DNA of 64,000 nt from Lepidodermella squamata (taxonomy: Eukaryota; Animalia; Gastrotricha). The stretch covers positions 744,001-808,000 of the forward strand of contig JBLDXI010000023.1 in assembly GCA_047495785.1 (NCBI GenBank). The letters run 5' to 3'. Position 1 is the first letter of the stretch; each line of letters opens with the position of its first letter. The notes below the pieces were generated by a model that saw only the letters and a list, made by a program, of their open reading frames with translations, searched no databases and was not told where the DNA came from. The translations under genes and the position numbers were made by a program. Below are positions 1,736 to 53,085 of this stretch, one piece after another.

Positions 1736-3988
1736 TTAAAATTGTGGATTATAGCCAAAAATCAGACCCAAGAATTGGACCCAATTATTACACCTGAATT
1801 ATCGAAATTTCACTGTTTACAAGATGTTTTCTGTGCGTTCCTTGAATTCTTTCGCCACAAATTTGGTGTCAAACGAACCGCCGGGTCATGGCCTACACTT
1901 CGCCGACAGGCATTTTGCTCTACGGCGCATCGTCTTCAATTGCTTTGCCGTAAACAACTTGTAAACAGTGGATTCACTGCGCAATCCACCAATTAATTGA
2001 TATGAAAATTGTCACATGGTTTCCAATTACTATTACGGCTGTAAACCTAATTATGATCTAGGTTATCCTAACTCATTAAATCCTTCATTTTAATTTTTTG
2101 CCCTTCGAAAACTGGCAGGGATGATTTCTATCATTACTTCTATCATTACTATTCGCGAAGATAAGACTTGACAGGTTAAGCTAAACGAATGTTACTATTT
2201 TTGAAAGGTATCCATGGAACGCCCGACTTCGAATATCTTCGCCGATTAGCAGTTCAGTTACTGTTGCAAGCGCTTCCATCATCAGCGAGCGGTACTTGCT
2301 AACAACTGCTTACCCCTTATAGCAAGTTGAATAAACCATCTTAAATCTGACCGATTCTGACCTGATACCTTTCAGCAATGCGCTCAGTAACACGACAGGG
2401 GGCTATGCCAGCAACATTCTGGCATTTCTCGGCGATGTTAACATTGATGTGGTCGAAGCCACTGAGGTGTCGATTGTGGCCGAAGATTACACATGGCACC
2501 CAGCTTTCAACCCAATCACGATTGACTACGACTTCGCTCTCATCAGGCTGGCCAAAGCCATTGATTTTCGCAAGTCATGGGCGATTCAAAAGATATGTCT
2601 GCCCATTTCGTGCACTGATGCTTGCGCTACCGAAGGGACCGCAGTGAGCGTGCCAGGTAAGAACCGGGTGAAAGGGCCTAGTCAGTGGAATTTTCCATAG
2701 AATCATAATTCTGGGATGCAACTGCAATTAGCAATAATTCTCTACATCGCTACAGGATGGGGCTTCAATACGACCTCGACTTCTACTTTGCTGAAACAAG
2801 CAGATATGAAGATTGCCAACCTTGCAGACTGCAAATTGCAGTACAGCCGGACACAGACGCAGATCACGCGACAAAAGCTGTGCGCCACAACAGCAGGTGG
2901 CTTCCCGTGGGCCTCGGATCAGGGCGGTGGGCTCGTTAGCAGCAATAGCACGAGATTCACGCTATGCGGTGCCTTTTCATATACCGGCTCCTTGGATGCA
3001 TACTCAGTCTTGTAAGGGAATCATCAAATATGCTCACCACCTGTTTACCTTCAGCTCAAATTCAGCTCGAAAGTTTGCACTGTTTCATCTTGGATTCAGA
3101 ACGTTATGTCCCAGCTGAACCCGCCGCTTGCCAGCGAAACATCTGTCAAAAAGACATGCGGCCAGACAGTGTACTTCAACGGTTTAAATTCCGCCGCAAG
3201 CATCACTTGAGGCTCGATCGCCCTACCTTATGAGTTTCCATGGTGAGAGGACAAGAAAATCGATGAAGTTACTCCAATATCAGCTTGCAGGGTCGTTCGC
3301 CTTTTGGTATCAATGCGGAATACAACGAATTCACAATTGACCCAATTTCCGTGCGGCGGTAGCGTCATCAACGAAAAGTAATATTTTACAATACAGACAG
3401 CACTTGTATTTACTAGCGTTTTTCTAGGTATATCCTCACCGCAGCTAGTTGTGTAAGCATGGTTGGCTCGACATTTGTGTGAGTTACTTTTCTCAGTGGA
3501 TCTGAACCTATGACAACTTGCTTGAGAACTGCGAAAATTTTCCAAAATTCCTTAAAAATTCCCTTTTCACTAATAAGTACCTGGAGGCAAGATGCTGTTT
3601 GCTGTTTAGCAGTGCTTCTCAACGTTTTCCCGAAGTGGGCCATTTTCTAAGTAATTTTCCATCCCAGCGGGCCGCTACCACTGTATTGTAAGAACACAGC
3701 AGGCCGCAAATTTAGAATGTGAGTGAAATTCAACAGATATTGTTGCTGTTTAGTCGCTAATTCTATTGCGATGAAATTTGGAGCACAAAAAATGTAACAA
3801 AAATTGGGCATTCACGAGTAAGTACTGAGTATGTATTAAGAATTATCAAATAAGTTTCCAGTTTTATAAGCAATTTTTATGAGCTGACATTTCCGCTCAT
3901 CACAAAATGAAACTGGAACGGATTGGAACGTGAATAAAAGAATAAGAGAAAGATAGGCCTTATTAATAATATTAACAGCATTAAGCTC

Positions 3989-4390
3989 AGTGGCGTAGCC
4001 AGGATTATTGTTTGGGGGAGGGGGTGATGATTTTTCAACGTTAGCCTCGAAAAATTTTGCGGCCTAAAACCTACTTAAAATTGGTTCGCGAGCGAAGCGA
4101 GATTTAGCTGTCGCTTTTTCAGGCATTTTCAACCCGAAAATGGGTTAAAATGCATTAAAATATGGGTGATTCATAGGAACCCTGTAGTTAGACTTCCGGG
4201 CATCGCTTGTACCAAAGCTATCAGTGTGCGAAGTATGATCCGGGAGCTGAGGTGTTTACTACTTGTTTCCTAGGACCCAGCCGAAGAAACCAAAGGGTCC
4301 CCCTGTTGTTTTTTCAGCCTTCTTCTGTTTGAGGTCCCGTAGCTCGGGTGTTGCAACAACCTAGCACCCTTGTACTTCGCACCCTGAAAG
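3989..4390. repeat. Dispersed-repeat fragments in an SP-A intron (CAGTGGCGTAGCCAG-type MITE end plus a repeat shared with about 13000-13200)
   Basis: CAGTGGCGTAGCCAGG near 3989 resembles the termini of the 61130 element. CCAGCCGAAGAAACCAAAGGGTCCCCCTGT recurs at about 13085-13113. Confidence 0.6.
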
Positions 4391-5504
4391 CTATTCAAAA
4401 TGATTGGTAACAAGGCTTGCAGGCCGCAACCAATACAAGTTACCTAGTTGAGTGCTGGGCCGCACAAAATCGGGCTGCGAAAAAGGGAGGTTGAGAAGCA
4501 CTGCTGTTTAGTAACTAAACAAGAGCAATGATTTATGATTTGTGATATAACCAGGTCGGTGACAGTATTTTTCGGCGAGAGAAATGTCACAATTTCGAAT
4601 GAGGTTGGCGAGTACAACTTAAATTCAACATCAATCAATGTCCACCTTTCCTACGTCGCGTCGACAACAATCGGCGCTCCGAACGACATCGCCTTGATCC
4701 AACTTCCATGTAACTCTTTTGATCGATTGAAGCCTGTATTTTTCCAGACTATTTCTCCGCTATTGACCATAGCACCAATCGACCTCACCTCATGGTATGT
4801 GAAGTCTATATGTTTACCAACTGCTGCGAGTGACGATTGCACAGATGGCGATGTTGCAGTTGTAGCTGGTGAGCAATTTTCCAACTTATTTAATATTCTG
4901 AATGATACATGTGATATGAATGCATTTAGCTATTTCAAAGCTATTTCAAACTTAGAAACAAGTGCTAATCTCTTTCCATCTAATAGGTTGGGGTCTCACA
5001 AATGAAGTCGGGTCTGCGTCAGATGTGCTTCGCGTTGCCACGCTGTCGATAGTCAACAAAGCGAATTGCCAATCGCAGTATACAACAGCCACCATCACCG
5101 ATTCAATGATTTGCGCAGGTAGCCACTGTTTTTCCAGTTGATTCATTTATTAGCTGCATGAATGATGAAGGATATTCTGGATTCGGGCCGAATGCGTGCG
5201 CGGGTGATAAAGGCGGACCGCTGATGTCAAGCACACAAGGTTTCTACAAGCTGTGTGGCATCGCTAGTTTCAACTCGAGATGCGGTGAAGGAGCGACAGG
5301 CTACACTCGCATCACATCTTTTCTTTCTTGGATTAATTCCAATACTGTCTAGTTCCTAAGATTTCGTCTGGAGTAATATAAAAGTAGACATCGCTGTGAA
5401 TTCAGCCTATGAGTCTATATTATGCTAAATTGTAAATTAAACACATTTTTATGCAGTTGTTGGTAATGCAGTGAGCCGAGAAGGATTTTATCTGAGGTGG
5501 ATAA

Positions 5505-7036: not shown

Positions 7037-7272
7037 GTAAGCTATTTTCAAAGTTGAACAGAGGCAGTGTCGGAAGTACGCTAGTGGTGGTAGGGATCCA
7101 TCCTAGTCTCCGAGGGCGGCCGAGACAAAATAAAAAAGTTAAGAATATGACTAAAAGCCGACTAATCTCGCGTGATTATTCAGTTTTAGCGCACCCTGTG
7201 ATATTATAATGAGGCTGTTGCGCGGCCACAACTAGGCGCGCGCATAAACCGTGTTTTTAACGTTCATCGAAC

Positions 7273-7587
7273 CGCGCGCGCTCATGTCAAAGGGCTACTT
7301 ACGAATATCCTGGCGGCTTATATACCAAATTATAATTCAGACAATTCTCTTTCGATTGAATATAGGTTTCCTGGGTGAAAAATTCGATCTCAAATACATT
7401 TTGCGTGCGCGCTAGGAACATTTCCGCACTCAACTAAGTCAAAACTTGGCGTGCACTAGCAGGTATTTGAGATCGAATTTTTCACCCAGGAAACCTATAT
7501 TCAATCGAAAGAGAATTGTCTGAATTATAATTTGGTATATAAGCCGCCAGGATATTCGTAAGTAGCCCTTTGACATGAGCGCGCGCG
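7273..7587. repeat. 125-bp inverted repeat with a 65-bp spacer
   Basis: 7273-7397 is the reverse complement of 7463-7587; no mismatch seen by eye. Confidence 0.9.
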
Positions 7588-7654
7588 CTTCCTTCAAAAT
7601 TCCATCCCTGGATAAAAATCCTACTTCCGACACTGTTTTCGGTTTTTAGCGACT

Positions 7655-8667: not shown

Positions 8668-11600
8668 ATGTATCTTTTTCGCTTCACATCCTTCTCAGCT
8701 CTACTAGCAGCTCAACTGTTGGGTGTAAGCAAAGCTTGCTCTTTCCCTGCATCAAATATTTCAAAAGTTACATTGGCTACAACAACAGCGAAAGCCAGTA
8801 CACTACCGGATGTTTCGAAAGGACGGCAGTGCGATACTAACATGTTTATGGCTGTTGCGGGAAGCGGATCGCAGGTTAATGGCGGGTCAACTGCGCCTCT
8901 GTACAAGTAAGCATTCTGAACGCAGTCAAGTCAAATGTATCAAGGTCTGCCTTCCCCCAAACCAGATATCCGTGGATGGTTCTTTTGAAAATTTATACCC
9001 CCTCCTCATCATTCAGATTCGGTGGGGTCATCTTGGACGAGCGTTACGTGTTGACTTCAGCTTCGCTTATTTCGTGAGCTGAGGTTTCATTTACCTTGAA
9101 TAGCAATTTAATTTATCTCAATACAGAAAATCTATTGCATTGACGTATTATTCGGCCATCAATGCGGGTGATATCACGGCAATTTTCTGCGATATTAACT
9201 TGACAAGCAAAGAATCGACCGAGTTTTCAATCAAGGCAGACGGCTTCACGTTGCATCCTCTCTATGACCCATCAGCGTTGAATTACGATTTCGCGGTCAT
9301 AAAGCTTTCTCAACCATTGAACTTCTCCAAAAGCTGGGCAGTTCAGAAAATAAGCCTGCCAACGACGTGCAGTGATGAATGCCCGCCTGGATCGCAGGCC
9401 ACAATCGCTGGTAAGCAAATTATTTCATCTCATATCGATCTTAATCAATCGTATTAGGTTGGGGAAATTCCGGCTACTCTGGTTACAATTACTCGTTACA
9501 AGTGGCGAATTTGCAGATTCAAAGCCGTGAAGCTTGCGCCACCGCACTGAAATCGGGGACTTTTACATTTTCTGAGGAGAAGCTGTGCACTCTCAATTCG
9601 ACGACAGTTAAAATGAGCAACGTCGATATTGGCTCGCCGCTGGTTTCAAACAACGGGGCAGCTTACAAGTTGTGTGGAGTTTTCTCGAAATATTTCTCCG
9701 ACACTGGGATTGCGTCTTTGTAAGTTACCTCAAAACTTGAATTTCACGCCATGGGAAACCCGAAATCTGAAAATATATCATCAAATCGTAATCAAATCGT
9801 ATATCATCATAATTAAGTTGAGTCGTTTCCTCCAAGTCTTTTGGACCGCAGTTTTCATCTAGGCTTTTCGATAACTGCCCTGAAATTTGCCGGGGGCTCG
9901 TGCTAAACTGAAGGTGAGCTATTCGGCATATTCGGCCAAACAATTATCAGGGTCTTTTTCTGTGTATTCATGTAACAAGGGAGTCGATGTACTTCTTGAA
10001 GAATAGGTATAGTTTTTTGTTTGTAAGAAATAAGTTATGTTTTTTTCTCCAATTCTACGCAAACACGCAGACATATAAGCCAACACGCTTAAGACTCGGA
10101 ATTACAACAACAAGCCGACAATTTATATAAAAATAGAAGTTAAAATAAAATCTATATTACTAAACGACGAAGGTCCTCAACGGTTAAATTTGAATTTTTC
10201 TTTGTATTTGGCGGCATGCTTAGATAGTATACTTCCACTCACCCGGTAGCCAAGTGCTTATAGTGTCATTAGATAGAGAATAAAAATGCCAGATTTCGAA
10301 TCCGTCAAATCCGCAGTGTCAAAAATGCCAAAAAACAAATAGAGCGCTTTCTGCTTTTGAACGCAATTTAATTTAAAATACGAAAACATTTTAAAACTGT
10401 TACTTATTACTAAATCAAATGTTTAATATTTTGATTTAAATACTTTCCATGGCGACGCGTTTGCGGGGAAATTCAAAAATTCCGGTCGCCGGGCGCCGCG
10501 TCGCCTGGCCCAAGGACACGTCCACGGGGTCGGGGCAACGTAAATTCGTGCCCAGCATGGTCGAAATGATATTTAAAGCATGAGAAAAGCAAATAAATCG
10601 AAAAATTCGGGGAGTAACCCATCACCCCAAGGAGTGAACTGATTCGACTTTTAGCGATGTTACAAGTTTTCTTGGCTATGCATTAATCAGATATGCTGAC
10701 CTTTTTATATAATCACATTTATATCTGGGCTTTCTAATCAAATCGACCATGCTAATCATGTGACGTAGATAGGACGCCGCACTCAGAGCACGCCGGTTGA
10801 CCAAAAGACGAGGTCACTTTTTAGCTCATGAATATTCAGAATAATTTGGAGCGTGAAAATTTAAAATGACGGGGCTTCATTCGAATTCGTTTGATAATTA
10901 AAATTTAAAAATTTAAAATTAATTAGTTCAAGTTCTAAAGATCGCAAAAAGTAGTGTTTTGGCGCGATTTCCGAGATGAGATGCATCTTTGAAGATGAAC
11001 TCAAATGATGGATGGCGGCATCTGCTCAAAATTTGATCAAAAGTCAACACAAATAGCACAAGAAAAATTTTGGAAAAATTGGGGTGGAAAATAATGACAT
11101 GATTCATCTCATTAAATTTGAAACGGTGAACTTTGCTCCTTATTAGTCTGACTTCAGTTTTTCGTGTCCGAAAACCTCTTAGTGCGGCGTCCTATCTACG
11201 TCACATGATGCTGATGACGAATCTTACGTGCGCTGACCTCAGCGACGTGTCTTTATATGAGATTTTAGAACCCCTCAGTGCAGTCTACGCGGTTACCAGT
11301 GATCCACAGTTTGAGAAATTTTACCGCGAGTATACATTGTTGTTTTACTAGTAAAAAATTAAAACAATAATTCCGCCAATTATTGTTTCATTTATAAAAC
11401 CCATAAAACCCATTTCGATGATGGTTCTGTTCGAACTTTTCTTTTTTGAAATAATTAGGTTTCGCTAAACGTAAAACCGATCATTTCTCTGCAGCAATCT
11501 AGCAATCTATCTTGGAAATGCGAAACAAGTTGACCTTTGAAGATCCTGCTTAGAGGGCCAAATTTCTCACTTTTTTATCCTATTCTGAATTTCAAAAATT

Positions 11601-14600
11601 GCTTAAGTACAGGGCGAAATTCCTGTGTTTTTCGAAGGCTGTTAATTAACAAATAATTTTCCTCAAATTTGCATTAGCTCGCGGGTATGTTCAGTTTTAC
11701 CGTGGATTCGAAGCATAATCAGCCAATCCAATCAACCAACCCTGCCGACCCCGACCACGCTAAGCTCATGCGGCCGGTCCAAGTACTTCACAAGCAACAA
11801 TGTGCCAGGCTCAGGAATAGCTGGCGGCTCAATCGCTCTCCCAAATCAGTTTCCATGGTAGGAGCTTTTCTGAAAAAAACAGCTATTATGAATGTTTTAT
11901 TGCTCATCCGGCAGGGTTGTACGGCTTGTCAGCTATTTTTCGTTTACCTACGCTTCATCATGTACAGGCAGCATCATTAGCGAAAAGTTAACATATATTA
12001 TCAATTGATCTTTCAAGGCTTAATTTTATTATAGTTACATCATCACTTCGGCCCATTGTGTCAAAAAAGACTCCCCTGATGACTTGAGGTTCGTGTCAAC
12101 TCAGCACCTTCCTAGCTACTGGATAAAATAATGTCGCAATACTAGTTACCTGGATGTATACATTGGCGAACACGATAAGACCAACAATTCAGAACCTGGT
12201 GAATTTGTTATGCGAGTCACTAGTTCGAAAAGCACGATCAAGCCGCATCCCGCTTACAATCCAATCTCTCTAAACAACGACATTGCGTTGATCAAGTTAC
12301 CAAGTAAGGATTCAACAGTAACTCTTGTACTCCAGTTTCACTCCGATTTGCTTCAACAGGGCCGCTAAATTTTACAACTTGGAATGTTCAAAAAGTGTGC
12401 CTGCCAACCTCGCCCAGCGACGATTGCAGTGTAGGAATGATGGGCGTTGCGGCCGGTAAGATGAATTTTTAGATCTTAGAATGTGCCTCCGCTCAGCCGA
12501 ATAATTTGTTGAAAATGGCAGGAAAAAAGGTCGGCAGGGCAATGACAAGCAAAAATTATCGGTCCTTAGTTGTTCATCCCCGTTGTTCCAATAGATATTT
12601 GACTCGAATTCGATCCTTTCTGCACATGACCGATAACAAAGGAGAAGCGGGCTATGGTGTAATTTCTAGATTTTCTAGAAAATGGAAAAACGTGTGCTGA
12701 CTTGAAGAGGGACGATTCTTGCATTTTTGAATGTTCTCAGTCAGTTTTTCTTGAGGATATAGAATTACTAGACATGGTTATTCCATAATATTTCTATTTC
12801 TAGCAAGATTCCTCACCTCAGATTGCCCTTAAAAATCTCGGCTGCTCATAAAACAATAATATCAGGAGAATTACTAATTGAGGCTATCATAACCTAATCT
12901 TTTAAGCGCGCATTTTAGCAATTTTTCACCATTAAGCATTGAAACCGAATTTCTCAGCACCTAATTTCACGGGTTCCGGAGACTCACTTGCCCATCTCAG
13001 GTTGTCACCGTGTTCCCTGAGATCCAAGCAGAGTGTGAAAGAGGATCCGGGAGCCGAGGTGTTTTCTACTTGATTTCTAGGATCCAGCCGAAGAAACCAA
13101 AGGGTCCCCCTGTCGGTTTTCAGCCTTTCTCTGGTTGGGGTCTCGGAGCGGGGGTGTCGCGACACCCCAGCACCCCTTCACTTCGCACCCTCGATCCAAG
13201 CTGTTAGTTGCATACTCTAGAGCCCGCCCGTCTTTCACCACCTGGTCACTCTGGGTTCCCAAAGTTCCCCAGAATATAGCATTCTGGCTGGTTTTAAAGT
13301 TTAGTTTCAGCCTAATTTCACGTGTTCCGGAGACTCAACCTGTTCCTTTAACTCTCCAAAAATGCTACGTAATACTGTGATAGCCCTGGAATAGCACTGC
13401 CGTAGTTGTGTTATTGAGTTTGTGCTACCAGTTTGTGCTACCAGTTTCGTATTATTAGACAATTAAATCCTACTTTTTTTTTGTCTCAGGATTTGGACTT
13501 GCAAGTGATATCAACGCAGTGATCAATGTCCTTCGCTACGCATATGTTCCTGTCGTGAGCAACGCCGAGTGCGAAGCAATTTACAGGGCACATTTGTAAA
13601 TCCCACCTAGAAACGTCCAGGGTAAAAATTCAAAAATTCTGCCTTTTCCCCCATTTTCTTCACTCAAGTTTAATAAAATAGATATTTATGTATTTGAATA
13701 ATTCAAATACAAACAATTTAATAATTTCTAAAATATTTTCCATGGCGACGCATTTACGGGGGGAATTTTGAATTTTCGTCAAGTCCGGTCGCCGCGTCGC
13801 CTGACCTTCCCTATGTTGCAGAGCAAAAACCATGATGGATAAATCGATTCTGTAAATTGCGCTGAACTCAGCATAGTCGAATTACCTAAGAACCGTTGAA
13901 AAAACAATAGGTCAGGAAAATCGACTTTTTTGCCACTCCGGCGCCTTAGTACCCCCTTAGGGGAGATCTTGAGTCATCTTATTCATCTTTCTGGATCTCT
14001 AACCGTAACTCCTGGAAGCTTCTAATATTGATTTTTGTACTCTACGCACTCGATTTAGTAAAGGAAAGATCTTTTTGAGAGATCATATGTATTCTGTTGG
14101 TCTCAGAAGATCTTCTTCCTTCATCCTAAGACAGGCTATCCTTAGTCACCACGCTAACTTGCCCTGCAAGCTTCTTAAATGACTTTGGGTTGATATGATC
14201 TCTCAAAAAGATCTTTCCTTTACTAAATCGAGTGCGTAGAGTACAAAAATCAATATTAGTTCAGCGCAATTTACAGAATCGATTTATCCATCATGGTTTT
14301 TGCTCTGCAACATAGGGAAGGTCAGGCGACGCGGCGACCGGACTTGACGAAAATTCAAAATTCCCCCCGTAAATGCGTCGCCATGGAAAATATTTTAGAA
14401 ATTATTAAATTGTTTGTATTTGAATTATTCAAATACATAAATATCTATTTTATTAAACTTGAGTGAAGAAAATGGGGGAAAAGGCAGAATTTTTGAATTT
14501 TTACCCTGGACGTTTCTAGGTGGGATTTACAAATGTGCATTTACAGGAGTGGAACCGATTCAATCATTTGTGCCGGTATGTAAATTTAGATGCAAAGTTC

Positions 14601-14815
14601 TCTTCCTAATAGTTTTAAATTTCGCCCGCTTAGGATATGCCGGATCAGGACCTAACATTTGCCGCGGAGATTCTGGTGGGCCACTCATGTCGACAGAGCA
14701 AGGCTACTACAAATTATGTGGTCTCAACGATTTTGCATATAAATGCGGTTATACATACGGCGGTTTCACACGTGTAACTTCCTTTCTCAGCTGGATAAAC
14801 GCCAATGCTATATGA
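8668..14815 (+). CDS. Secreted tandem two-domain S1A protease SP-B (dead domain 1; domain 2 with full His-Asp-Ser triad); one exon interrupted by a transposon
   Basis: ATG 8668 with signal peptide. Domain 1: VNGG..YPW, LTSASLI, NYDFAVI, NVDIGSPL. Domain 2: IAGG..FPW (about 11820-11857), TSAHC (about 12045), NDIALI (about 12275), VCLP, NICRGDSGGPL (about 14655), SFLSWI. GT-AG introns at positions shared with SP-A and SP-C. Confidence 0.85.
10370..10610. repeat. Diverged relative of the terminal repeat of the 13588-14538 element
   Basis: CCATGGCGACGC..GGGGAA..CGCCGCGTCGCCTG..CAGCAT..TCGAA at about 10447-10565 parallels about 13740-13881. Element ends not resolved. Confidence 0.55.
10757..11207. 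mobile_element. MITE, CATG-terminal family (8-bp TSD; hAT- or P-like)
   Basis: 27-bp TIR CATGTGACGTAGATAGGACGCCGCACT; TSD ATGCTAAT/ATGCTGAT. Confidence 0.85.
13588..14538. mobile_element. Mutator-like fold-back non-autonomous DNA transposon inserted in a coding exon of SP-B
   Basis: About 280-bp near-perfect TIRs (GCACATTTGTAAATCCCACC...), an inner inverted repeat of about 63 bp, and an exact 9-bp TSD ATTTACAGG (13579-13587, 14539-14547). Confidence 0.9.
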
Positions 14816-15574
14816 CACATAGCTCGAGTTGCAAAGAATTATTTTATATTATTGTTAATCAGAATAATTCTGAAAAAAACTTAATCGAGAATATTGCTGT
14901 GAACCTTTACCTTTTACTGACCTGGTTTGCTAACCAGCTACTCAAAACTCGAATCCCAAATGCTTGTAAGCGTGATTTTTAAGTAATTCGTTATCAGTGC
15001 TACCCCCGATATTGAAATCGTCGGCAAAAGCCAGTAAAATAGAAAAACCTTCAGAAAGTTGGCCAAAATAGCCAAAAGGGAAAAACTGTGTTCAGTTGAA
15101 TGACGGCGTAACTATGATTATATTATCGTTGCTTTACAGATATCGCTGTTGTTTCAAGCAACATTTTTGCGGCCGCAGGACTAAAACGCGTTGTAAGCAG
15201 ATTATCTTCAGTTTGATGCATGAAAAAATGGATAATTATACCGCAACAAGAGGCCGGGATTCACTGCTCTCATTCAGGAAATACCTGTTGGTTGCTTGAA
15301 TGATGGGGTTACGATAATTCTCATTCCCTGGTGTATAGTGCAACTTGTATAACAACTATACACCAGAAAAAATATCACCCTAATTTATCTACGGAATGCG
15401 TGCAATCAGTTTTGGTATCTGAATTCCTGCTCTCAGTAGATAAATAACTGCGTTTTTGTACATGAATTAGGGTGATTTTTGGCCTGAATTCAGAGATAAA
15501 TGTTGAAAATCGGTGAATTAGGATACTCACCTATATATTGGAACTTACACCGTTGTTTCCCTTTCCATCTGCTA

Positions 15575-15950
15575 GGTTGGGGTCTCACTAATCAAGCTGT
15601 GTCGTTATCAGACGTGCTTCGATTTACCACGCTGTCTATAGTCAGCAAAGCTACATGCCAAGCGCAGGATACAACTGCTACCATCAACCATCACCGATTC
15701 GATGATTTGCGCAGGTAATCAGTGATATTCCGAGTTTTTCATTTCTCAGATGCATGAATGATTAAGGTTATTCTGGATATGGACCAAATGCTTCCGTGGG
15801 TGATGCAGGCGGACCACTGATGGCAAGCACACTGGGTTTCTACAAGCTGTGTGGCCTCGTTAGTTTCGGCTTGAGATGCGGTGAAGCAGCAACAGGCTAC
15901 ACTCGCATCACCTCTTTTCTCTCCTGGATTAATATCAATGCTGTCTAGTT
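15575..15950 (+). pseudogene. Degenerate copy of the last two exons of SP-A
   Basis: GWGLTNQAVSLSDVLRFTTLSIVSKATCQ..., then GDAGGPLMAST..FYKLCG with frameshifts. Intron retained, so this is a DNA-level duplicate. Confidence 0.8.
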
Positions 15951-21279: not shown

Positions 21280-21578
21280 GTCTATAGTCAGCAAAGCTAC
21301 CTGCCAATCGCAGTTTACAACTGCTACTGTCAGCGACTCAATGATTTGCACAGGCAATCAATGTTTTTCCTCTTGTTTCATTATTATTCAGTTGTATGAA
21401 TGATCAAGTTTATTCTGGATTCGGGTCAAATGCTACAGGCGGACCGCTGATGGCAAGTACACAGGCCTTCCACAAGCTAGGAGGTATCGGTAGTTTCGGC
21501 TCGAGATGCGGCGAAGGAGCGACAGGCTAAACTCGTATCACCTCTTTTCTCTCATGGATTAATGCAAATGTCGTCTAG
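21280..21578 (+). pseudogene. Second degenerate copy of the SP-A terminal exons
   Basis: SIVSKATCQSQFTTATVSDSMICTG, then GGPLMASTQAFHKL..CGEGATG*TRITSFLSWINANVV, with a deletion across the catalytic loop and a stop. Confidence 0.8.
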
Positions 21579-21880
21579 TTCCTTAACATTCGTCTGGAAT
21601 GAAATAGCCGAAGTCTATTAGCCTACATTCTAAAAAAAGCAAATAAAAATATCTCTAGATCACTGAGATCTTCTAGCAGCACCCGATGCTTTTTACTTTT
21701 TTAACATTCACCAGTTGACCCTGAAATTTGAGATCGCACCCGTCATATTCTACTCATATTCTGGAAAGTTGTGAGTAAAAATTGTCCAACAGAGTTCTCA
21801 AAGGTGCGTGGATCGCATTCCTTCATTCTCTTAATTTGAAAAAAATTCACAAAATAAGTATGTAGTAATTATCAACAGAA

Positions 21881-28676: not shown

Positions 28677-30965
28677 TTATAATACAATATTTTCATTAAT
28701 CCATCCGAGAAAGGAAGTTACTCGAGTGAATCCTGAATACAAGTACCCACAGCTGACAGCATAACTCGTGATCCCGCATAGTTTGTAGTATCCCCGATCA
28801 GAAGTCATCAGAGGACCGCCCGAATCCCCCTGACAAACACTGACGCCAGAATCTGGATAGCCTGTTAGAAGAATAAGGTTAGAATCTGTAGGAGTACATA
28901 TCCCGCTTCAGAATTACCTGCGCAAATCATCGAATCGACAAAAAAGCCAAATAGATTGTTGCAAGTAGTTGCAGTTTGAACTGGCAGTGCTGCGTATCGA
29001 AGAACGTCTGTTGTAGCTGAACCGGAGCTATATCTTCCCCAACCTTTGAAAGAAAGTTGACAAAACTGATTATACAGACTGAATCGGACTAACCAGCTGC
29101 TATTGCCATGGAGCCAACAGCGCAGTCATCTGAAGAAGAGGTCGGTAGGCAAAGCTTTTGAACATTCCAGCTTGTGAACGAAATCGCAGCTGAAGAAAAA
29201 ATATTTCAAATCTCAAAAATTGCTAAGCGTGCCTTGTTCTCACCTGGAAGTTTGATAAGAGCAATGTCATTAGCAAAGGATGATGAGTTGTACCCGGGAT
29301 GGGGCTTGATGTTTGCGGCCGGGGCGTCAATTGTGTACTCTCCAGTTTCAACTCTTGTCAAATTATGCTCGCCAATGTTTATTCGAACAAATCTTTATCG
29401 AATAAAACCGCTTTTTTGAAGCCTCATTGCGAAGTTTCAGAACTTACGATACGGCCACGGAGCCTACGACACAATGAGCAGCTGTGATTATGTAGCTGGA
29501 GGAAAATCGATGAAAAATTGAGTTTATCACATGGATTTAAGCATACCGATCACTGATTATCGACCCAGTACAGGATGAAGAGCCTCTGTTGACATATGTA
29601 GTCGTGAACCGTACTGCCCTATTTTTTGGTAAGTAATAACAAAATTGACGTGCTATCAGAGGCCTACCATGGAAATTGATTCGGCTGAGCATTGAATCCG
29701 CCAACGATTCCGACTCCAGGCAAATTTTGGTTGTAGTAGTAAGAGGAATGGCCACACGCACTGTTGACTGAAGTCGGAGCTGGCACAGGCCGGCTCACCT
29801 GGGATAATATGTTTTGAATCCACGGTAAAACACGGCAGACTCTAGTGCTAGAAAACACTTTCTAAGGCCCGAGGAAACTTTTGACAAACTTACTGTACAG
29901 AAAGATTAGATGCCAAATCTGTCGAGTTTTTCGTGTAGGAGAATGAGCCGCACAAATGGTACCGTCCAGTGTTGAAATTGACTAGCCCCGCACCCTGGTC
30001 GATACCAAAGGGGCCGAAGTTGAGATTGGGAACGCCAGCGCATTGTTTTTGATCAGTTATCCCCATTGTCCCACCGTATTGAAGAATGCATTGGACGGGG
30101 TCGGATATTTGAAGGCCAGCTTCAAGAAGGACCGGGGAAGAACCAGTCAACGAACCCCAGCCTGAGAATCCCAAACATTTCTGATTCCTGATCGTGATTT
30201 TTTTGCAAAATTCTCACCTGCAATACTGACGCTTGATCCAGCCTTGTAGCACGGATGGTCGCAGGAGCTTGGTAAACATATCTTTTTAACAGACCATGTT
30301 GTGAAATTGAGAGGGCTGGCCAATCGAATTAACGCAAAGTCGTAGTCGAGCGACGTTGGGCTGAAGAACGGATGCCAGTTGTAGTCCTCAGCTGCGATTG
30401 AAAATTCACCGGGCTCTTCGATTTGCGAATCGTTATCCGCAATATAAGCTCTAATGTTGGCTACTGATCGAACCCCCGCAAGGCTGTGCGATAAAAAAGA
30501 AAATGCTGAATATCCTTTCAAAATTAAGCGACATCTTACTATAAAGGATAAGCCGTTGTAAGCAGGTATCGTTCGCTTACAATCGTCGCACTGAAGTTCG
30601 AAATTCTGGTCGCTGATATTCGGATACTGATTCGAGCATTCCACGGGTACCTTGACGAAATGTTTTTGATGAAAGCTGAATTCATACCAAGTAAAATAGG
30701 AAAACTTATTAGGCTGCACTTGAACTCCGTTGGCTACATTTGAGCTGGTGTAGACTGAGTTATAGGTGTAAATATTAACGCCGCAAGCATCTAGGGCCTG
30801 TAATCGCTCGGCTTCTCTCTGAAGCGCCGCAGCTGGTCCATTGTTTACTTCAGCGGTGATGGCGATGGGCGAAGTAGACGGCTTGCAAGCTAAAGCGAAG
30901 ATCCGACTTGATGATTCGAGAACAATTATGTAGATGACAAGTCTTAAGTTGGTGGAAATCGACAT
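28677..30965 (-). CDS. Secreted tandem two-domain S1A protease SP-C (dead domain 1, intact domain 2), multi-exon
   Basis: Domain 1: VANG..YPW, LTTAYPL, DYDFALIRL, FGIDQGAGL. Linker RVCRVLPWIQ..CG. Domain 2: IVGG..FPW, TAAHC, NDIALI, LCLP, GWG, SVCQGDSGGPL, SFLGWINENIVL*. Confidence 0.9.
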
Positions 30966-31429
30966 TTTACGTGGATGTCAAACTTTCCTGGTTCATCTTT
31001 TCTGACCGCGTTTTAAGCATTGTAAAAAGTCACTACTCATGCATGGCTCGAATAAATTTCGTGGTAGAAAGCTGCGTTATGGGCAGCCAAATTAAAAAGC
31101 TTGCCGTGGCAGAGTTAGGTGTCGTAGAAACGCCCCGTGTTCGAATAATAGCTGCTTATGCGGAAAAAAACATCACCATTCTTAAAAACAAGTAGAATCC
31201 ATTACACCACGAAAACTATGAAGCAGGATGGCTGAAAAATTATGAAGAGCTGTTATTCCAGAATATGCAATTCTCGTAAAAGCTGCTGATAGCCAGAAAT
31301 CTTGCAGAACATATAAACAATTATTTTTAATTCTACGTTTGAGGGTTTGAACATTTGAAAAAATTCCGCAAACTTAGGTTTAATTTGGATATCCATTTAT
31401 TCAGGCTCAAGAAAAATCAATCGGCCGAA

Positions 31430-50711: not shown

Positions 50712-52162
50712 TTCGTAAATTCAAAAGTTTGAGCTGATAATTACTTGCTGGAGATTGAATTTATTTGAAAAAGAAAGTTCCAGATTGTTCTCTACTCGGA
50801 AAATCGCGATAAAACTCCAAAATCCATTGCTTCCATCTGATGTTCAAACAATCTGAAGGTTTTGAAAATTGAAAAGTTGCCAAGCTGAAGGGGAACCCTG
50901 TATAGATGGCTTTTCGGATTCCGGATATTGAAAACCCTTGCGAGTGTGAGCTCACCGGCTTTTCCGTTCCGCGACATAAATTTAAACGTAGGATGACTTA
51001 AATTTGTCGGAACAAAAGCCCGTCGTTGCTTTGCTCGGGATTCTGGAACCACGGATTGGTGGGGAAATTTGCGGTCATTATAAGATTCAAACAACGAAAT
51101 AATAATTGCGATTCGAGTTTTACCGAGGGGAATTGCAGAAGTGTAAAAACTGGCCATAATGGATAATATAAGGTTATGGAAATTTGTGTAGTTGGCACAT
51201 CCCAGAAATTTATAGCCCCTGCTAGTGTTTCTGCTGCTGTCATAGGCTTTTCCGTTCCGCGGCATAGATGTCAGTATCAAGCATGGTCCCAGTTTGCCTG
51301 CCTCAGTTTTCGCAATGTTGCTGATTTTTCACATTATTGAGCGTGTTCCTTGATCACCACCCGAGTCTGCTCAATCGCGTGCTGGACCTCTTCGGATGTC
51401 TGAGTCACGGAAAATTTGCTCACATTATAGCTCGCTGTCCACATTAGCCGATCCCCTATATTCCGAGGCGCCCCTTGAAACGGCCTCGGTACTGTTTCAC
51501 TAGCGTTTCAGTATAACTCTCCATAGATTATTTACCGCAAATAAAGAACAATTTAAGATTGAAGCTACCTTCAATCGAGATGAAGTTACCGTCAAATCTA
51601 ATCTTTGATTGGAATTGAGTGGTTTTTACGCATAATTTGTGGCTTATGGCTAGGTAAATGAAGATTTGTGACGATATCTAGAACCAACTCGGAGTGTTCT
51701 CAAGGGCTGTCCGTGGTATCCGCATTAAAGAGCCTAAAATATCCATTTAGGCAGTGCGACTGTAGCTGGGAAACTGGCCGTATTAGTATATGCCCGCAAG
51801 GGGCTGTCTGCCTTAACGAGCGCGGCTGTAGTACCCTGAGAGCCTAAGAGAGACAGATTCCGCGAACGGCGTAATTGGTTTCAAAAACTGATCGAGTATC
51901 GAGTAACACATGAGCAACGTCGACAGTCGACAGTCAGCGCAAGGACGCTACAACCGTCAAGCTTCATAGGGCCGACTGAACGCTTCGGCCAATGGGCCGG
52001 TGCCTGAGATTGCTGAGCATCAACTGGAGAATAATCGGAGTAAAAGCCGGCCCAGTCAGAGTGTACAGAATCACTAGGTGACTAAAATAACTCGTTTACT
52101 AAATATTCGATTTCACAGAGATAATTCTTTCTGATTGAATTAACCGGACGCCTTGCGCGACT

Positions 52163-52201
52163 GCCAACTAGTTTCGGTTTTATTTAAACCATCTTCAGGG
52201 C
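52163..52201 (-). ncRNA. Minimal type I hammerhead ribozyme (inverted copy)
   Basis: Reverse complement of 52895-52933. Confidence 0.65.
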
Positions 52202-52271
52202 CTAGACAACAATTAACAACAATGAACCTTTTGCTTGCGAGGCAAGTGACAGGAACAATACCTCATTTATC

Positions 52272-52658
52272 CATGAGACGTACTATAGGACGCCGCGGCT
52301 TCGAAGCTCCCGTTACATGGGCCTCATGAAGGCCGCGGACTGTGCATATCGGAATTTGCATACGAATTAAATTTTAGTCCAGTAATTTCGAAATTAAAGA
52401 AATTTTAATTTATAAAATTTTAATTTTTTAAATGTCAATAATTAAAAACTGATGAGAATTCTTTTACAGCAAAAGATCGGCGTGACACTGTGTAAAGATG
52501 TGTTGATCTCGTTGATCTTAAGCAAAAAAGAGACTTGAGATGATTGCAAAAAGTGCAATGAGATGATTCATTGGTCGAGCTGGACTTTGAACCTCATTAA
52601 AAATATCACGCTTTTTCTGATTCTCAGCAAGCCGCGGCGTCCTATAGTGCGTCTCATG
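52272..52658. mobile_element. MITE, CATG-terminal family
   Basis: TIR CATGAGACG(T/C)ACTATAGGACGCCGCGGCTT; exact 8-bp TSD CATTTATC. The empty site is visible in the opposite arm of the fold-back. Confidence 0.92.
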
Positions 52659-52894
52659 CATTTATCATCACCAGTAATCAAGCGGCGTAAATTCGAGATT
52701 TTACATTTTTAAGATATAAGACTACTTATAGATCAAATAGATCTATTTATCTATCTATTTGATCAATAGTCTTATATCTTAAAAATGTAAAATCTCGAAT
52801 TTACGCCGCTTGATTACTGGTGATGATAAATGAGGTATTGTTCCTGTCACTTGCCTCGCAAGCAAAAGGTTCATTGTTGTTAATTGTTGTCTAG

Positions 52895-52933
52895 GCCCTG
52901 AAGATGGTTTAAATAAAACCGAAACTAGTTGGC
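52895..52933 (+). ncRNA. Minimal type I hammerhead ribozyme (Penelope-associated type)
   Basis: GCC-CTGAAGA-T-GGTTT-AAATA-AAACC-GAAA-CTAG-TT-GGC: conserved core, 5-bp helix II, palindromic mini helix III (AACTAGTT), GCC/GGC helix I. Confidence 0.7.
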
Positions 52934-53085
52934 AGTCGCGCAAGGCGTCCGGTTACGTCAATCAGAATGAATATATCGATAGAACACCAAATAATCCGTC
53001 TGATAAAGAAAGATACAAAACATTATAAACCTTAACTCCGACGGTTCAACTCTACTTAAGAACAGTTCAAATATATTGAAAATAT

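Follow-up and report, generated by a model that had tools for sequence, protein, structure and literature searches.

A 951-bp fold-back element interrupts a coding exon of SP-B, by its sequence a trypsin-like serine protease (S1) gene, in the 64,000-nucleotide stretch of Lepidodermella squamata DNA analyzed here (contig JBLDXI010000023.1, positions 744,001 to 808,000 of the forward strand, referred to below as the window). The element occupies 13588-14538, is bounded on both sides by a perfect 9-bp target-site duplication (TSD), and is missing from the same site in two other data sets, one of which shows that the gene is transcribed. The original prediction had taken it for a very recent transposon-generated intron of the Introner type, that is, one made by a transposon that creates introns. 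Our analysis bears out a recent insertion into an exon of an expressed and otherwise intact gene, and an in-frame GT...AG excision does exist on paper, but an in-frame fit of this kind is common and nothing marks the element as a member of an Introner family. In our judgement, the locus probably represents a young insertion allele caused by a Mutator-like element (MULE)/Foldback-like transposon, and is either null or, by way of cryptic or SOS splicing, leaky.

We established the structure of the element by reading the sequence of 13300-14800 together with a repeat search (Table 1). Two perfectly complementary terminal inverted repeats enclose an inner pair and a central loop, with the left inner arm set off from the outer arm by a 153-nt piece at 13869-14021. 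In the DNA run X2 (see below), the depth over this piece is ∼2200-2700 (∼30x single-copy), versus 50-90 over the single-copy flanks, and the piece is either an independent short repeat of high copy number that is nested in the element or a segment that the right arm has lost. The RNA of the element is predicted to fold into a 281-bp stem of -702.6 kcal/mol. A check of open reading frames (ORFs) found no coding capacity in the element beyond short mechanical ORFs, and a search for tRNA-like parts found none. One Rfam match on the inner hairpin, to MIR821, reached 83.9 bits against a cut-off of 249 and was set aside as an effect of the long stem.

To describe the host gene, we built an exon model from the sequence, its frame-by-frame translation and the intron joints in contigs of the cDNA run X1. 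Two SP-B exons score above the cut-off of the Pfam Trypsin family (PF00089). Removing the element and one copy of the duplication restores ...CEAIYRSGTDSIICAG... and a 242-residue domain that runs from IAGG to WINANAI and a stop codon, in which the His-Asp-Ser motifs TSAHC, DIAL and GDSGGP are all intact, in line with the earlier description of an otherwise intact domain. The insertion falls between Arg and Ser of CEAIYR/SGTDSIICAG in the second-to-last coding exon, within what we take to be the surface loop between the equivalents of Cys168 and Cys182 (chymotrypsin numbering). When the element is left in place the reading is IYRAHL followed by TAA at 13597-13599, the immediate stop that had been noted before, and this stop precedes the catalytic Ser and lies ∼1 kb before the last exon junction. 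Since the frame would break upstream of the catalytic Ser, three codons into the element, the default outcome would be a null allele. Rescue by exon skipping is unlikely, because skipping the 126-nt exon keeps the frame but loses the equivalents of both Cys168 and Cys182.

Searches of public runs found only three, X1 (cDNA), X2 (DNA) and X3, and X3 gave no match to the window. Contigs from X1 skip the introns at 11987-12034, 12304-12359, 12456-13489 and 14576-14633, all of them GT..AG, and SP-B is therefore expressed, with splicing as in our model. Splicing of the non-canonical kind known from Fritillaria was considered but set aside, as the SP-B introns are GT-AG in the cDNA. At the insertion site, window positions 13587 and 14554 are separated by just nine letters (AGAACAATT) in one cDNA contig from X1 and one DNA contig from X2, and the X2 contig spans the flanking introns as well. 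Both of these empty alleles hold a single ATTTACAGG and no element, which proves that the duplication arose on insertion. As the insertion is missing from both data sets, it is recent, polymorphic or strain-specific. Element words are absent from X1, both in a search of the run and in its contigs, while X2 holds 72% of the sampled element words. The only cDNA run thus stems from the empty allele, and shows the splicing of the empty allele only.

The filled and empty alleles also differ in sequence next to the element. The Arg-Thr-Ile of the empty alleles, which adjoins the insertion, keeps the TITDS motif of the paralogues, and four more exon differences follow within the next 117 nt (including 14657-14664; Ile to Val and Arg to Tyr). 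Left of the insertion X1 is identical to the window; the differences cluster on one side of the transposon.

Table 1. Features of the interrupted SP-B locus (window positions; a slash marks an exon-intron boundary)
Feature	Positions	Strand	Details
Left TSD copy	13579..13587	+	9 bp, ATTTACAGG; codes I-Y-R; single in the X1 and X2 empty alleles
Left terminal inverted repeat	13588..13868		281 nt, begins GCACATTTGTAAATCCCACC; 100% complementary to 14258-14538
Candidate donor ttt/GTAAAT	13596..13601	+	8 nt inside the inverted repeat; contains the in-frame TAA at 13597-13599
Competing donor agg/GTAAAA	13622..13627	+	element position 35; 3′ of the stop codon
Piece present in the left arm only	13869..14021		153 nt, CT on each side; high-copy repeat, nested in the element or lost by the right arm
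Inner inverted repeat, left arm	14022..14088		67 nt, 100% (repeat search)
Central fold-back loop	14089..14192		104 nt
Inner inverted repeat, right arm	14193..14259		continuous with the right terminal repeat
Right terminal inverted repeat	14258..14538		281 nt (repeat search)
Element-borne candidate acceptor TTTCTAG	14513..14519	+	with GT13596 leaves a 36-nt in-frame scar
Right TSD copy	14539..14547	+	ATTTACAGG; contains the acceptor TTTACAG/G, AG at 14545-14546
Allelic difference adjoining the insertion	14548..14553	+	filled allele AGTGGA (Ser-Gly); X1 and X2 empty alleles AGAACAATT (Arg-Thr-Ile)
Exon with IAGG start of the protease domain	11732..11857	+	5′ limit not fixed (<=11732); X1 record 1
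Exon VVRLVSY...CTGSIISEN	11915..11986	+	X1 joints, translation
Exon with catalytic His (TSAHC)	12035..12088	+	X1 joints, translation
Exon with catalytic Asp (NNDIALI)	12146..12303	+	X1 joints, translation, Pfam
Exon	12360..12455	+	X1 joints; followed by the 1034-nt intron 12456-13489 with a very high-copy repeat
Interrupted exon	13490..14575	+	13490-13587 and 14548-14575; 126 nt without the element
Last coding exon, GDSGGP (catalytic Ser) and stop codon	14634..14815	+	X1 joints, translation, Pfam

Next, we considered how the element could be removed from the transcript. The donor GTAAAT and the AG in the right TSD copy are present where they had been reported, and the earlier arithmetic is correct: a splice from 13595 to 14547 would leave 9 extra nt and yield IYR-AHL-SGTDS in frame, with the predicted junction GCACATTT^GAGTGG. 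On paper, the donor at GT13596 is in frame and stop-free with three acceptors, AG14546 (+9), AG14519 (+36) and AG14549 (+6), while across all GT/AG pairs near the element ends the product is in frame and stop-free for 6 of 63. The competing donor at 13622 lies after the stop codon, so its use would not rescue the frame. The weight that such a fit can bear was gauged in a simulation in which the element was inserted at every position of the SP-B coding sequence (687 sites). An in-frame, stop-free product was obtained at 73 of the 687 sites (11%) with an AG inside the duplication, and at 132 (19%) with an AG no more than 20 nt away. An in-frame fit of this sort is nothing unusual and is weak evidence for an intron. 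A donor and acceptor both borne by the element would leave 8 + 19 + 9 = 36 nt at any site, and this scar is open in 3/3 frames, though we estimate that about 1 in 4 strings of 27 nt would by chance be free of stops in every frame.

Under the reading we favor, a non-autonomous fold-back DNA transposon would have been cut and pasted into a coding exon of the expressed SP-B gene, and if the gene were rescued at all, this would be owed to general pathways of the host and not to an ability to form introns that the element has evolved. In one such pathway, cryptic GT-AG splicing would join the donor at 13596 to one of the three acceptors; in the other, the hairpin would trigger spliceosome-independent SOS splicing. 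The best that either could yield is a leaky allele whose product carries a small insertion in the loop that follows residue 170 (chymotrypsin numbering). Several observations weigh against this reading. A loose donor, aaa/GTTAAC, is used in the X1 cDNA, which places GTAAAT within the splicing range of the organism, and the acceptor TTTACAG/G is a good one. Each of the three acceptors nearby is in frame with this donor, and the scar of the element-borne pair is open in three frames. The Cys-to-Cys loop ranges in length from 12 to 16 residues across the paralogues and differs by one residue between the SP-B alleles; since its length varies, a 3-residue insertion would probably be tolerated. Finally, X1 as the only cDNA comes from the empty allele and so is compatible with efficient, precise splicing in carriers, and the copy number of the element, taken from summed contig depth, is rough.

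If the element were already a spliceosomal intron, U1 would bind GTAAAT at 13596, the TSD would supply TTTACAG, and most transcripts would be joined as 13595^14547 to give an active protease carrying AHL, so that an intron gain would be seen here just as it arises. We consider this unlikely, although the arithmetic is exact and stop-free, weak donors are used by the organism, and the length of the loop varies among paralogues. The splice signals would be buried, as the predicted 281-bp perfect stem takes in both the donor and the likely branch region. As splice sites are chosen co-transcriptionally and the donor's complement is transcribed ∼930 nt later, U1 could bind first, and the duplex would then be an obstacle but not a bar. 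The six donors in SP-B are tg/GTAGGA, aa/GTTAAC, ag/GTTCGT, aa/GTAAGG, cg/GTAAGA and cg/GTATGT, and apart from GTTAAC the other five each have a G at -1 or +5, whereas ttt/GTAAAT has neither and agg/GTAAAA at 13622 is a slightly better match. That donor competes with GTAAAT from a position after the stop, as the acceptor at 14519 does with that of the TSD. Five of the six SP-B introns are 48-58 nt, and the only other long one (1034 nt) combines a strong donor with a long T tract, both of which the candidate 13596-14546 lacks. No junction read was found, the sole cDNA being that of the empty allele. In favor of an intron, there is a precedent: some Introner families carry one splice site and draw the other from the target duplication, and one family, in Aureococcus, adds 12 in-frame nt (PMC9860276). 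Like the Introners (Huff 2016, Gozashti 2022 and 2025), the SP-B element is non-autonomous, has inverted repeats and a TSD, carries one splice site with the other possibly supplied by the duplication, is missing from the same site in other samples, and would bring the in-frame gain of a few codons that is documented for Aureococcus (PMC9860276). Unlike them, it is apparently low-copy, measures ∼1 kb, buries its splice signals in 281-nt perfect repeats and is known here from sequence alone.

Those same repeats bring into play SOS splicing, by which mRNAs of C. elegans and humans are freed of DNA transposons in their exons with 90-100% efficiency (Zhao et al., Nature 2025, PMC12779559). This process is set off when the inverted repeats pair, works without the spliceosome, cuts at varied non-GU-AG points near the repeat ends and gives products that are partly in frame; its factors in worms and human cells are AKAP17A, CAAP1 and RTCB (PMC12779559). 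As the main removal route in SP-B, it would recognize the paired 281-nt repeats, cut at several non-GU-AG points in or near them and religate the RNA, leaving mixed indels of which part would be in frame. We regard this as possible, if on balance rather unlikely. As in the known cases, a DNA transposon sits in a coding exon of an animal gene, with perfect long inverted repeats that can pair as a trigger and a strong predicted fold, and removal near the repeat ends would leave small indels that are at times in frame. Pairing of the repeats is both necessary and sufficient in C. elegans, where exonic Tc1, Tc3 and Tc4 as well as non-autonomous elements are removed, and the factors are conserved to humans (PMC12779559). 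However, the pathway has been shown in C. elegans and human cells only, for elements of the Tc1, Tc3, Tc4 and HSMAR2 type and not for fold-backs (PMC12779559), and the repeats here are five times longer than those of Tc1. Overall, the comparison suggests that 281-nt perfect repeats in a coding exon would fit the SOS trigger at least as well as they fit an Introner. Another reading is that the element belongs to a true Introner family, a transposon lineage that has evolved to insert into genes and be spliced out, and of which many near-identical copies would form introns throughout the genome. Whichever way round the element lies, its symmetric ends do offer one and the same donor (8 nt in) and acceptor (19 nt in), the resulting 36 nt would be in frame anywhere, and Introners are known in animals, including sea urchin, tunicate, sponge and copepods (PMC12130899, PMC9860276). 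The window, on the other hand, holds a single copy and one 78%-identical intergenic fragment, the depth in X2 suggests few copies, the X1 transcriptome is without element sequence, and the open scar is of a kind that chance supplies readily; we judge a true Introner family very improbable. Quite unlikely, though less so, is a family built to be harmless in exons, whose symmetric ends would always allow in-frame splicing out, with a 36-nt open scar or a 9-nt one where the target has AG at positions 7-8, and of which the SP-B allele would be a polymorphic intron gain in an expressed animal gene. An assembly artefact, in which the element was wrongly joined into the exon, might be suspected from its absence in both other data sets and from the difficulty of assembling long perfect palindromes, but 9 bp of host sequence that occur once in the empty alleles are perfectly duplicated here, which is the mark of real transposition and not of a misjoin, and the chance of an artefact is next to negligible.

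Returning to the insertion allele that we favor, the kind of transposon can be narrowed by its structure. Long inverted repeats combined with a 9-bp duplication make up the Mu/Foldback pattern (PMC2774946, PMC3169594); maize Mu has repeats of about 215 bp and a 9-bp duplication (PMC2774946), and a nematode example is Tm1 (PMC3169594). The SP-B element agrees with Mutator-like and Foldback elements in its 9-bp TSD, very long inverted repeats, fold-back build, short non-autonomous form and nested insertion. It differs in that no transposase or autonomous partner is seen in the window, and in that its repeats are without the short tandem subrepeats of Drosophila FB or Tm1. Because there is no transposase, we infer the superfamily from these features. 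Merlin elements, with a target duplication of 8-9 bp, are an alternative superfamily.

There are also classical precedents for a transposon allele that leaks through cryptic splice sites, namely maize Ds, dSpm and Mu, and Tc1 of C. elegans. Splice sites borne by Ds are a documented case (PMC5395267). The likeness to SP-B lies in donors and acceptors in the element ends that would allow imprecise removal and partial function, whereas the classical alleles rest on RNA and phenotype data and the present case on sequence. As it stands, the insertion is an ordinary event, a young DNA transposon in one member of a tandem protease family. It also makes a clean natural test case, as a filled allele (the window) and an empty allele (X1, X2) both exist and the gene is transcribed, and as the predicted products are distinct: +9, +36 or +6 nt for spliceosomal removal, scattered non-GU-AG junctions for SOS splicing, or unspliced RNA. 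Its outcome bears on how an animal other than worms and humans copes with an exonic transposon, and on whether such insertions can begin as introns.

We then asked how widespread the element is. Within the window the terminal 31-mer occurs only at the two ends of the element, with 0 occurrences expected by chance, and BLAST of the element against the window returned the element itself and a 78%-identical 90-nt fragment at 10422-10507, which is intergenic. In X2, the depth summed over both arms is ∼435-560, versus 50-90 for single-copy flanks and contigs, which suggests that only few copies are present in that sample, a rough figure as it comes from summed contig depth. The 57-residue ORF that lies within the inverted repeat had no match in an exact look-up, and a 28-mer of the repeat end was absent from the metagenome contigs searched. 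A 20-mer of the repeat end had four matches in metagenome contigs that shared just those 20 bases, and these were dismissed as chance. A word search with the last exon for proteins carrying AHL found none at E <= 1e-8 among annotated and transcript-derived proteins.

Around the intergenic match, a fragment of ∼110 nt in 10400-10510, between two protease genes, has in common with the inner part of the inverted repeat a CCATGGCGACGC...CCGGTCGCCGCGTCGCCTG motif (78% identity). Judged by sequence, this fragment could be either a decayed relative of the element or a shared binding-site module.

SP-B belongs to a trypsin-like tandem family that extends over 2400-5350, 9250-9700, 11700-14815, 15500-15950, 21400-21580 and 28680-30970(-). 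At the point homologous to the insertion, the paralogues at 4986-5120, 15575-15716, 9496-9681 and 29044-28901(-) all run unbroken, so that the absence of an intron there, as the original prediction had it for two paralogues, holds for four. Several family members are dead or broken, as seen in NVDIGSPL in SP-A, GDKGGP at 5170-5349, GDAGGP in SP-C and a stop-containing fragment at 21411-21575. The family is a fast-evolving one that turns over by birth and death, and in it the loss of one copy may cost little.

SP-C carries a frame-shifting 7-nt tandem duplication at 15682-15695 (ACCATCA/ACCATCA) that the paralogue at 5088-5100 lacks, and it lies a few bases from the position that corresponds to the SP-B insertion. 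This duplication may be the footprint of a transposon excision or the product of replication slippage. With its GDAGGP motif, in which the catalytic Ser is replaced by Ala, SP-C is probably a pseudogene or a dead protease. Together with the SP-B insertion and the allelic difference at its right edge, the duplication makes three lesions at a single conserved position, which may be a target of transposons that bears excision footprints, unless they coincide by chance.

Other repeats were noted in and around the gene. The long SP-B intron, 12456-13489, contains a very high-copy repeat, with an X2 depth of ∼10,000 at 13021-13254, as well as 27-nt direct repeats at 12960-12986 and 13311-13337, and bits of the intron repeat occur in the X1 cDNA. 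Elsewhere in the window lie two more young inverted-repeat elements, one at 52124-52972 with 148-nt arms at 98% and one at 7269-7591 with 129-nt arms at 99%, the ends of both being unrelated to those of the SP-B element.

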